A stretch of DNA of 64,000 bases from Hypanus sabinus (GCF_030144855.1 NW_026779564.1:682001-746000); one strand, 5' to 3'; shown: positions 10,681 to 12,351, numbered from the stretch's first letter. Translations and numbers: made by a program. Notes: generated by a model from the letters alone, not told the origin.

Positions 10681-12351
10681 ATGGGATATCCAGTAATCTG
10701 GCGGATAGAAGACATTTACTACCCTGTTATTTCAGTCGTTGGGATTCCCGGTAAGCCGCTGTCACACCTGCAAACGACAGATACTGCGAGTTAATTCCGG
10801 TGTTCTGAAGTGTTTCTCTCGCTCTGCTTCCACAGCCACCTGTCCAGTCCCCGCTTTTCAGTCATGGGCGGAAGGCGCTGACAATATTAATCCCATTGCG
10901 TTCGTAGCAGGCAGCGCTCGATATTGGAGCCGAGATGCTGCCTTTGACTGAAATCCTCTCCGCTGTCTCGATGTCATGTGATAATTGTGAATCGAAATGT
11001 CTGCACAGGAGGACACCGGGCTGTGCTGCGTCTGTGGGAACCAGCCGTCCTTCTGTTCTGCCCATAGGAATTGCATGACTGGGTAACGGAACAAGGCGAA
11101 GGGCTCATTTATTTCTGGAATGTGAGCAGAGGGAACCGCCGATGTGGATTTCATTTCATTCCCGTGCTGCTCGGAGCCAGTGATGCGGATATTTAACGTC
11201 CATCTTTCACTGCTGCCGCTGTCCGCTGGTCGGTTTGGGAATTCACCCAGGTTTAACTCATTTACAAAATTTTCGGCAAGTTCTCTGACACTCCGATAAT
11301 GCGCACTGCCAGTCGCTTCATATGTTCAGTGTCCGGTATTCACTCTTTGAGGCAAAAAAAGAACAAGATCTAATCTGATTCTGTCACACTGCGGCTCTAT
11401 TTCAGTGACGAGTCAGTAATTTCTCTGTTTCCCTCCCTCTCTCTTGCAGTTAACCTGGTGGCGATTGTTATCCTGTCCCGGGGAAAGTGCGGTCTCTCCA
11501 AATGCATCACTCGCTACCTGCTGGGAATGGCAGCGGCCGATCTCCTGGTCGTTATCTCTGACCCTCTGCTGAACTGGACTGTTCTCATATACTTTAGTTT
11601 TTCCTTCCTCTATTTGACTCCCGTTTGTAGGGTTTTTCGTTGCCTGCTTATAGCAAGCACCGGGGTCTCTGTCTGGATGACAGTCGCGTTCACCTGTGAC
11701 AGATTTGTGGCAATTTGTTGTGAAAAGCTGAAAACAAAATATTGCACCGAAAGAACAGCGGCTGTGGTTATCGCGACAGTGAGTGTTCTGGGCTGTTTAG
11801 AAAGTATCCCTTACTACTTTACAATAGAGCCTTCGATGAGAATTAATGGAGTTTCCTATGGCTGTTCGTCCACAAAGAGCTTCTATACGTCTCCCTCCTG
11901 GGCCGCAGTTGTGATGATTACTCGCATTTTCATGCCTTGTCTCCCATTGGTTCTGATTTTATTGTTCAATGTTCTGACAGTCAGACGGATTTTTTCTGCA
12001 AATAAAGTCCGGATTGGGCTCCGGGGCCGCAGCACCGGAAAGAATGACAAGGACCCGGAGATGGAGAACCGAAGGAAATTGGTCGTTTTACTATTCAGTA
12101 TAACCGGTAGTTTCATATTTCTGTGGTTGCCACGGTTGGTTTTTGATTACTACCGACGGGCTGCAAATATCCCTTTCTACTCGTACAGGGATGCGATTTA
12201 TATCGCAGACTCCACAGCGACGATGCTGCAGATCCTCAGCTCCTGCACCAACACATGTATTTACGCCGTGACTCAGAGAAAATTTAGAGAGGAGCTGAAG
12301 AACGCGGTGAAATACCCACTGAGACTGTTAACCAATTTCGTTAAATTCTAG
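10681..12351 (+). CDS. G2: GPR139/GPR142-like class A GPCR, 323 aa, join(10681..10750,11450..12351)
   Basis: Exon 1 MGYPVIWRIEDIYYPVISVVGIP+G, donor GTAAGC at 10751, pyrimidine tract plus TGCAG acceptor ending 11449. Spliced frame gives GIPVNLVAIVILS. Seven TM segments with YLLGMAAADLL, TCDRFVAIC, FLWLPR and SCTNTCIY, resembling human GPR139 (YLLALAAADIL, TIDRYIAVC, LWAPR) as recalled. Confidence 0.92.

Follow-up and report, generated by a model that had tools for sequence, protein, structure and literature searches.

Extracellular-Half Divergence of Two GPR139-Like Receptor Genes of Hypanus sabinus and Diversifying Selection in Their Shark-and-Ray Family

Introduction

The window analysed here, a 64-kb stretch (64,000 nucleotides) of vertebrate DNA from Hypanus sabinus (GCF_030144855.1, NW_026779564.1:682001-746000), contains five copies or fragments of a single gene for a G-protein coupled receptor of class A, as located by tblastn. 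Two of these genes, termed G2 and G5, are intact. The amino acid differences between them are concentrated in the extracellular half of the receptor. Purifying selection acts in the pair on the inner half, where the G-protein-coupling face is located, and codons lining the ligand pocket are under positive selection in another clade of the same family, represented by paralogs of Heptranchias perlo. It seems rather probable that G2 and G5 are an instance of the pocket diversification driven by selection in this family. We infer that the changes of the pair itself may have been selected rather than tolerated, that they may have altered the ligand specificity, and that the receptors could play a sensory role.

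Distribution of the Differences Between G2 and G5

Exon 2 of G2 (11450-12351, + strand) comprises the two last bases of a split codon followed by 299 codons and a stop codon, and matches the Pfam 7tm_1 family with E=5.6e-22. Its counterpart in G5 (57901-58802, - strand) is an intact open reading frame (ORF) of 299 codons plus stop (Pfam 7tm_1 E=1.4e-20), which aligns without gaps to G2 at 83% amino acid identity. Exon 1 and exon 2 were counted separately rather than joined, and the protein analyses refer to exon 2, which extends from the end of transmembrane helix 1 (TM1) to the C-terminus. The topology was set before counting from a series of anchors (N1.50=1, D2.50=30, R3.50=84, P4.60=120, P5.50=162, position 6.50=227 and N7.49=267 in exon-2 numbering), and the helix limits of an AlphaFold2 model agree with it. 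According to this topology, the outer class consists of the tops of TM2-7 and the extracellular loops ECL1-3, about 116-117 codons, and the remaining 182-183 codons make up the inner half of the receptor.

Differences between G2 and G5 occur at 51 of the 299 residues of exon 2 and at a single residue of exon 1 (residue 19, V in G2 and A in G5, among three nucleotide differences in that exon), which gives a total of 52 out of 323 (84% identical). The outer class accounts for 37 differences in 116 codons, compared to 14 in 183 codons for the rest (odds ratio 5.7, Fisher p=9e-8), and the original prediction, which had estimated about 52 differences in 323 residues with some 37 of them facing the extracellular side, thus proved numerically exact. 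Its counts for three hot segments, given here in G2 coordinates on the + strand, were reproduced letter for letter. Codons 119-143 (11806-11880), at the top of TM4 and in ECL2 around the disulfide cysteine Cys138, differ at 12 of 25 residues; codons 153-159 (11908-11928), at the top of TM5 (5.41-5.47), differ at 4 of 7, including 5.42, which is aligned with H187 of GPR139; and codons 227-253 (12130-12210), running from position 6.50 of TM6 through ECL3 to the start of TM7, differ at 14 of 27, including 6.50 (P in G2, T in G5), 6.51 (R in G2, L in G5), 6.55, 6.58, 6.59 and 7.35. The announced change from basic to acidic corresponds to a net charge of +1 in G2 and -4 in G5 for ECL2, and of +3 and -4, respectively, for the outer class as a whole. 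The pair also differs at three positions equivalent to ligand contacts of GPR139, namely 2.61 (N in G2, K in G5), 5.42 (V, Q) and 6.51 (R, L). The start of exon 2 and the core of TM7 had been described as identical, and they are so over the split-codon V plus the first 40 codons of exon 2 and over residues 254-275, respectively.

Substitution Rates in the Pair

The tests on the pair rest on the two sequences of the G2/G5 clade. Over the whole of exon 2, the nonsynonymous (dN) and synonymous (dS) divergences amount to 0.102 and 0.155, with a dN/dS ratio (omega) of 0.66 by the NG86 method and 0.75 by maximum likelihood (ML; p=0.25 against 1). The corresponding values are dN 0.207, dS 0.192 and omega 1.08 (NG86) or 1.32 (ML, p=0.42) for the outer class, and dN 0.041, dS 0.133 and omega 0.31 (NG86) or 0.35 (ML, p=0.005) for the inner half, where residues at least 90% conserved in the family show an even lower omega of 0.17 (p=0.002). 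Such a constraint on the inner half implies that at least one of the two copies stayed under selection. The non-coding K80 distance between G2 and G5 is 0.207 in the intron (5' half 0.13, 3' half 0.29), 0.33 in the 3' flank and 0.19 upstream; taken together with the omega values, these distances indicate that the pace of change was close to neutral in the outer half and one third of that in the inner half. The hot segments yield an omega of 2.0 (NG86) or 3.3 (ML, nominal p=0.015), which is no valid test since the segments were picked by their amino acid differences.

A reading of G2 and G5 as pseudogenes was rejected for now. Both keep their ORF and splice sites, the DRF motif, W6.48 and the cysteine pair linking C3.25 to ECL2, their inner half is constrained, and their departures from 125 near-invariant family columns (9 and 11) lie within the range of the family (median 4, 95th percentile 12). 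Polarisation by family frequency assigns 18 derived states to G2 (among them T6.50P, S6.33L, F5.41V, H5.45T, I6.60A and P7.30A) and 10 to G5 (among them P4.60S, A4.43G and R6.59L), and leaves 23 without assignment.

Diversifying Selection in the Wider Family

The family to which G2 and G5 belong comprises 2,038 database proteins at E<=1e-20. The 120 best of these 2,038 relatives all come from sharks, rays, skates or unnamed organisms, and most of them are annotated as 'probable G-protein coupled receptor 139'. The best matches to G2 and G5 are found in Mobula and Hemitrygon, and none of the 120 relatives listed is more than 68-70% identical to either receptor. Among other species, 40 close pairs without overlap (78-95% identity) differ at 23.5% of the outer-class residues versus 9.1% of the rest. 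The intracellular loops ICL1 and ICL2, the inner helix halves and TM7 are nearly frozen in these pairs, and the most variable helix positions are spaced by three to four residues, e.g., 3.29, 3.32 and 3.33 in TM3, and 6.51, 6.55 and 6.58 in TM6.

Selection at the level of individual sites was measured on ten paralogs of Heptranchias perlo, about 82% mutually identical, whose exon 2 sequences were taken from genomic DNA and arranged in a gapless codon alignment. The likelihoods given by the custom pruning code used for this purpose and by IQ-TREE (GY+F3X4) agree in every digit. For all of exon 2, the M0 omega is 1.04, and a class with omega >1 improves on a mixture limited to <=1 by twice the log-likelihood difference (2dlnL) of 202.8. 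The outer class alone, on its own tree, gives an M0 omega of 1.43 (p=0.016 versus 1), with about 30% of the sites at omega 0, about 50% near 1.25-1.5 and about 20% at 6-8. The test for omega >1 yields a 2dlnL of 104.5 for the outer class alone and of 0.0 for the inner class alone, the largest value among 184 null replicates of a parametric bootstrap being 6.3. With site-specific synonymous rates on a two-dimensional grid, the 2dlnL amounts to 55.6, and 26 codons reach P>=0.95, 24 of which belong to the outer class. Three outer blocks, each on its own tree, give 47.1, 34.4 and 31.1, compared to 0 to 0.6 for four inner blocks treated in the same way.

The approximately 25 Heptranchias codons with a dN/dS of 4-10 almost all line the canonical pocket, as judged from generic residue numbers. 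The selected codons are distributed among TM2 and ECL1 (2.56, 2.58, 2.61, 2.62, 2.64 and 2.65; ECL1 residues 49, 50 and 54), TM3 and ECL2 (3.29, 3.33 and 3.37; ECL2 residues 128, 137, 139, 140 and 142, which flank the disulfide cysteine), and the region from TM6 to TM7 (6.51; ECL3 residue 245; 7.31, 7.35, 7.36, 7.38 and 7.39). With respect to a list of pocket positions, the selected codons occupy 10 of 31 listed positions versus 5 of 43 others (p=0.03). Five of the nine equivalents of GPR139 ligand contacts, as derived from PMC12775434 and from an alignment to the solved structure, are selected (2.61, 3.29, 3.33, 6.51 and 7.39; p=3e-4 versus all sites, 0.017 within the outer class). A six-residue consensus pocket of class A receptors includes 3.33, 6.51 and 7.39 (PMC5662886), and these three of the six positions are also among the selected codons. 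Diversifying selection on pocket codons is well supported for the family, on the evidence of the Heptranchias clade, with the caveat that recombination among the paralogs exists and inflates the site tests to some extent.

Explanations for the Divergence of the Pair

The explanation to which we incline places G2 and G5, as intact gene-sized duplicates, in a very large class A family of sharks and rays that would be subject to birth-and-death evolution. The cytoplasmic half and the helix core of the receptors would stay fixed, so that every member presumably signals via the same transducer, and the pocket-lining residues (at the tops of TM2, 3, 5, 6 and 7, and in ECL2 around the disulfide cysteine) would be driven apart by diversifying selection, the outcome being a repertoire of receptors for different ligands. 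Since the duplication, the inner half of the pair would have been kept (omega about 0.3) and the outer half would have evolved neutrally or a little faster (1.1-1.3), its net charge going from +3 to -4, together with the swaps at 2.61, 5.42 and 6.51. The original prediction of diversifying selection on ligand specificity combined with conserved coupling is sustained as far as the purifying selection on the inner half and the family-wide selection on the pocket are concerned, and is not sustained in its claim of positive selection on the pair.

A number of results weigh against this explanation when it is applied to the pair. A dN/dS above 1 had been anticipated, and neither the outer class (omega 1.08-1.32) nor the whole exon (ML omega 0.75) differs from 1. 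The codons selected in Heptranchias provide an independent and unbiased class for testing G2 versus G5. Among the 26, the pair has differences at 8, versus 43 of 273 elsewhere (p=0.054), omega over the selected codons being 0.85-1.4 (ML 0.85) where a value above 1 was expected. The anticipated enrichment in the pocket, beyond a general relaxation of the outer half, was not found in the pair by any of three counts: differences affect 8 of 24 Heptranchias-selected codons versus 29 of 93 others within the outer class, 11 of 31 helix-top residues on the pocket list versus 10 of 43 off it (p=0.19), and 3 of 9 GPR139 contact positions (p=0.59). In addition, 19 of the 37 outer-half differences occur at residues at least 70% conserved in the 120 homologs, including P4.60S in G5 and T6.50P in G2. 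The highest omega values of the pair are found at the family-conserved outer columns (2.0 at 70-90% conservation, and four replacements with zero silent changes at 90% or more), and omega is not raised when the outer half is limited to family-variable columns (1.16, 0.85 and 0.67 at the 90%, 70% and 50% limits). Finally, synonymous divergence is raised at the hypervariable codons of the pair (t=1.07, versus about 0.35-0.45 elsewhere), the Heptranchias pairs show an outer-class dS of 0.18 versus 0.086 in the rest, and the trees of their blocks disagree. Owing to these synonymous and phylogenetic signals, a patchy gene conversion probably contributes to the pattern.

Gene conversion could, in a stronger form, account for most of the contrast between blocks, the conserved blocks having been homogenised by exchange of DNA between paralogs or the variable patches imported, so that the clustering of differences would reflect the structure of the tracts. 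As a principal cause this is improbable, although some paralog exchange in the pair likely remains. It finds support in the low dS of the first 60 codons (0.04-0.09, versus 0.15-0.3 further on), in the roughly threefold synonymous divergence of the family-hypervariable outer codons compared to the inner codons (about 0.35), and in the doubled outer dS and the discordant block trees of Heptranchias. However, the hot segments have a dS of 0.19, close to the value of about 0.15 found elsewhere, and a dN that is about ten-fold higher (0.38, versus 0.04 in the inner half). Imported divergent DNA would raise dN and dS alike, and the flatness of dS therefore argues against an import of foreign patches; the alternative of gene-conversion tracts, which had been named beforehand as a possible refutation, does not account for these figures. 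The cold segments 71-110 and 251-290 show a dS of 0.15-0.23, similar to that of the hot ones. Moreover, divergence amounts to 24-29% in the 3' half of the intron, which adjoins the identical start of exon 2, without any long tract running across it, so that one long homogenising tract does not explain the pattern either. The selection signal of the family also holds when blocks of 36-44 codons are given separate trees and when synonymous rates may vary from site to site, and the selected helix positions follow the pocket-facing side of the helices, which tracts would not do.

A relaxation of constraint is a more serious competitor, though in our opinion still less credible than selection-driven diversification. 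The outer half of one or both copies would simply have drifted neutrally, its pocket being redundant or decaying, and the inner half would be still selected or not yet decayed. This would agree with an outer-half omega indistinguishable from 1, with a proportion of nonsynonymous differences (pN) in the outer half (0.18) as high as the mismatch of non-coding DNA (about 0.18-0.27), with differences spread across the outer half without pocket enrichment, half of them at family-conserved residues (including 4.60 and 6.50), and with the excess of derived states in G2 (18 versus 10 in G5). Against it, neither gene is damaged and their splice sites are good, constraint on the inner half is clear, the invariant outer residues C59, C138, W150 and W225 are kept in G2 as well as in G5, and the departures from family-invariant columns do not exceed the upper range of other members. 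Besides, a mean omega of about 1 over a region containing fully constrained sites implies that other sites exceed 1, and strong positive selection acts on the same blocks in other family members. Taken on its own, the pattern of the pair is compatible with adaptive remodelling as well as with plain relaxation, a choice that two sequences cannot decide.

Gene Structures and Other Features of the Window

G2 and G5 each possess two intact coding exons, 323 codons in total. Exon 1 of G2 (10681-10750, + strand), recognized by a motif scan of ORFs and by its G/GTAAG donor, holds 23 codons plus the first base of the split codon, and is separated from exon 2 by an intron of 699 bp (10751-11449, + strand) with GT...AG limits. 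In G5, exon 1 (59525-59594, - strand; same motif and G/GTAAG donor) and the intron of 722 bp (58803-59524, - strand), which is alignable to that of G2, follow the same plan. In both genes exon 1 is 70 bases long, reads MGYPVIWRIEDIYYPVIS(V/A)VGIP plus one base, and covers a very short N-terminus and most of TM1; exon 1 of G2 matches the N-termini of homologs of about 324 residues. A polypyrimidine...CAG acceptor precedes exon 2 in both cases.

The two genes are convergent and lie about 46 kb apart, with G3 and G4 in between. Their homology extends over some 2.5 kb (10016-12517 versus 60210-57738), together with some upstream repeats, and ends 166 bp past the stop codon. This gene-sized homology, which includes the intron, indicates a duplication unit of roughly one gene rather than a retrocopy. 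Divergence between G2 and G5 is limited to 5-12% over the 265 bp preceding the ATG, exon 1 and the adjoining 260 bp, approximately, of intron (10416-11015 in G2, about 59860-59260 in G5), as opposed to 21-30% in the DNA flanking this block. Its upstream part (10416-10680, + strand) is a conserved, putative promoter-proximal or 5' untranslated region (5'UTR) block situated directly upstream of the G2 start codon. An alignment at 65-70% with each of the ten Heptranchias loci is obtained for exon 1 and about 240 bp located 5' of the ATG, and the block looks like a promoter or 5'UTR element conserved throughout the family.

A minisatellite of about 2.7 kb (7340-10110) occurs roughly 570 bp 5' of the G2 start codon. 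The G5 locus is alignable on both sides of this array, and a short stretch (60132-60297) matches both of its edges, which suggests that the array expanded at the G2 locus only. A run of N at 60316-60455, upstream of G5, falls outside all measured regions, and N runs were left as they are.

The three other members of the array are less complete or more divergent. G1 (3-874, + strand) is a paralog truncated by the start of the window, with 40% identity to G2 and tblastn pieces in two frames; the frame changes between the parts matching residues 36 and 48, and G1 is probably a frameshifted pseudogene. G3 is an intact divergent paralog (exon 2 at 34027-34890, - strand; exon 1 starting at 35686, - strand) which shares 49% identity with G2. 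The fragment G4 (44705-45010, + strand), which matches only the first 101 residues of exon 2 at 49% identity, is by its sequence a dead remnant within the array.

Outside the window, each of the fetched loci of 21-70 kb contains one family exon only (eleven loci, eleven genes). A NACHT/NLR gene in one of the Heptranchias perlo loci (L002:23744-27468) is the sole other gene called beside a receptor gene; as both families are expanded, this adjacency may be due to chance. A metagenome scan with the family alignment for host-derived paralogs gave 24 pattern matches, none of which was confirmed. In four sequencing runs of relatives, contigs are dense over the conserved blocks and sparse over the variable ones. 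At most 24% of the exon 2 words were recovered from any searched sequencing run, and H. sabinus is therefore absent from these runs. In a relative's run that is only guessed to be RNA, a single contig carries ...PTLAAVGVP, which resembles the end of exon 1, running directly into the exon 2 acceptor (11450), a hint that it could be a spliced transcript of a family member.

Receptor Class and Possible Significance

G2, G5 and G3 score 78.9, 74.4 and 73.7 bits against Pfam 7tm_1, for a cut-off of 30.5. The AlphaFold2 model of exon 2 (pLDDT 69, pTM 0.65) comprises the end of TM1, TM2-7 and helix 8, most of TM1 being encoded by exon 1, and a Foldseek search with this model matched receptors of class A in at least 500 cases at E<=0.001, with TM-scores of 0.6-0.7 among the top 50. 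With this model of moderate confidence the fold search did not single out GPR139, peptide receptors ranking equally. The class A signatures N1.50, D2.50, DRF, W6.48, C59 and C138, N7.49 and Y7.53 are present; departures consist of T at 7.50 throughout the family and of P at 6.50 in G2, where G5 and 87-88% of the homologs have T. Human GPR139 is the closest solved structure (E=9.8e-14, 54.9 bits, residues 1-281), followed by the CCK-B receptor (42.4 bits). By sequence, G2 and G5 belong to class A, and of the characterised receptors GPR139 is the nearest to them.

Across species and paralogs, ICL3 (exon-2 residues 181-212; RRIL..RVRRGLRG.SNGEN..DPEMENRRKS) is almost invariant and carries an insert absent from GPR139. 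Class A receptors seldom conserve their third loop to this degree, which suggests an intracellular partner common to the members of the family.

No description of this family in sharks or rays was found in open-access papers and preprints, and sharks, duplicates and paralogs are not mentioned in a 2025 review on GPR139. With a pocket under strong diversifying selection, a frozen signalling face and a nearest relative that senses aromatic amino acids, this family, which numbers many hundreds of receptors, could belong to a missing sensor set, or could represent a new array of immune or neuropeptide receptors. One speculative possibility, to which we attach limited credence, is that hundreds of receptors derived from GPR139 form, in sharks and rays, an undescribed chemosensory repertoire (for smell, for taste or in solitary cells) for amino-acid-like and other small ligands, which would offset a tiny odorant-receptor repertoire, G2 and G5 representing a recent switch of the pocket from basic to acidic. 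The pair may be regarded as a natural experiment, 84% identical but of opposite pocket charge and with swaps at three known contact positions. The new elements of the present work are a cross-species, site-level selection test with controls, and a negative result for the G2/G5 pair.

Comparison with Known Receptor Systems

Human GPR139 (structures 7VUG and 9M42) is an orphan receptor of class A with L-Trp and L-Phe as activators, and its R6.51 is the agonist-binding arginine (PMC12775434). It has in common with G2 and G5 the class A fold and W6.48, R6.51 being shared with G2 only. The agonist contacts E3.32, F3.33, H5.42, W6.48, R6.51 and N7.39 of GPR139 correspond to L, I, V, W, R and T in G2, and to L, I, Q, W, L and T in G5; apart from W6.48, G2 thus keeps R6.51 alone and G5 none. 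The family further differs from GPR139 by an NTxxY instead of an NFxxY motif, a T at 6.50 in most members, the ICL3 insert, an N-terminus of four to six residues and a phase-1 intron inside TM1. Unlike GPR139, which is brain-expressed and highly conserved across vertebrates (PMC12208981), the shark-and-ray family comprises thousands of database proteins. G2 and G5 were rejected as GPR139 orthologues on account of the contact residues that are not kept, the five copies or fragments in the window and the 2,038 database proteins at E<=1e-20.

The MRGPR family offers another likeness, as the contrast between outer and inner halves with respect to selection is the same as in the shark-and-ray family. 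In this lineage-specific expansion of orphan-like class A receptors of mammals, Choi and Lahn (2003) reportedly found positive selection concentrated in the extracellular regions, and purifying selection in the cytoplasmic and transmembrane ones. The MRGPR receptors belong, however, to an unrelated class A branch of mammals with a known expression in sensory neurons and mast cells, and the selected sites of the shark-and-ray family are located mostly inside the helix tops, i.e., in the pocket, as well as in loops.

The chemosensory families OR, TAAR, V1R/ORA and T2R resemble the present one by their tandem arrays of intact, fragmentary and frameshifted copies, their constant transducer face, their hypervariable pocket positions on TM3, 5, 6 and 7, and their large differences between species, no ortholog above 70% identity occurring here among the listed relatives. 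They differ from it by the lack of any sequence kinship and, for most OR and TAAR genes, by a single coding exon instead of two. Two traits of a chemosensory-type repertoire are present in the shark-and-ray family, namely a large lineage-specific tandem array with intact as well as broken copies and, as seen in the Heptranchias clade only, selection on the pocket combined with a constant transducer face.

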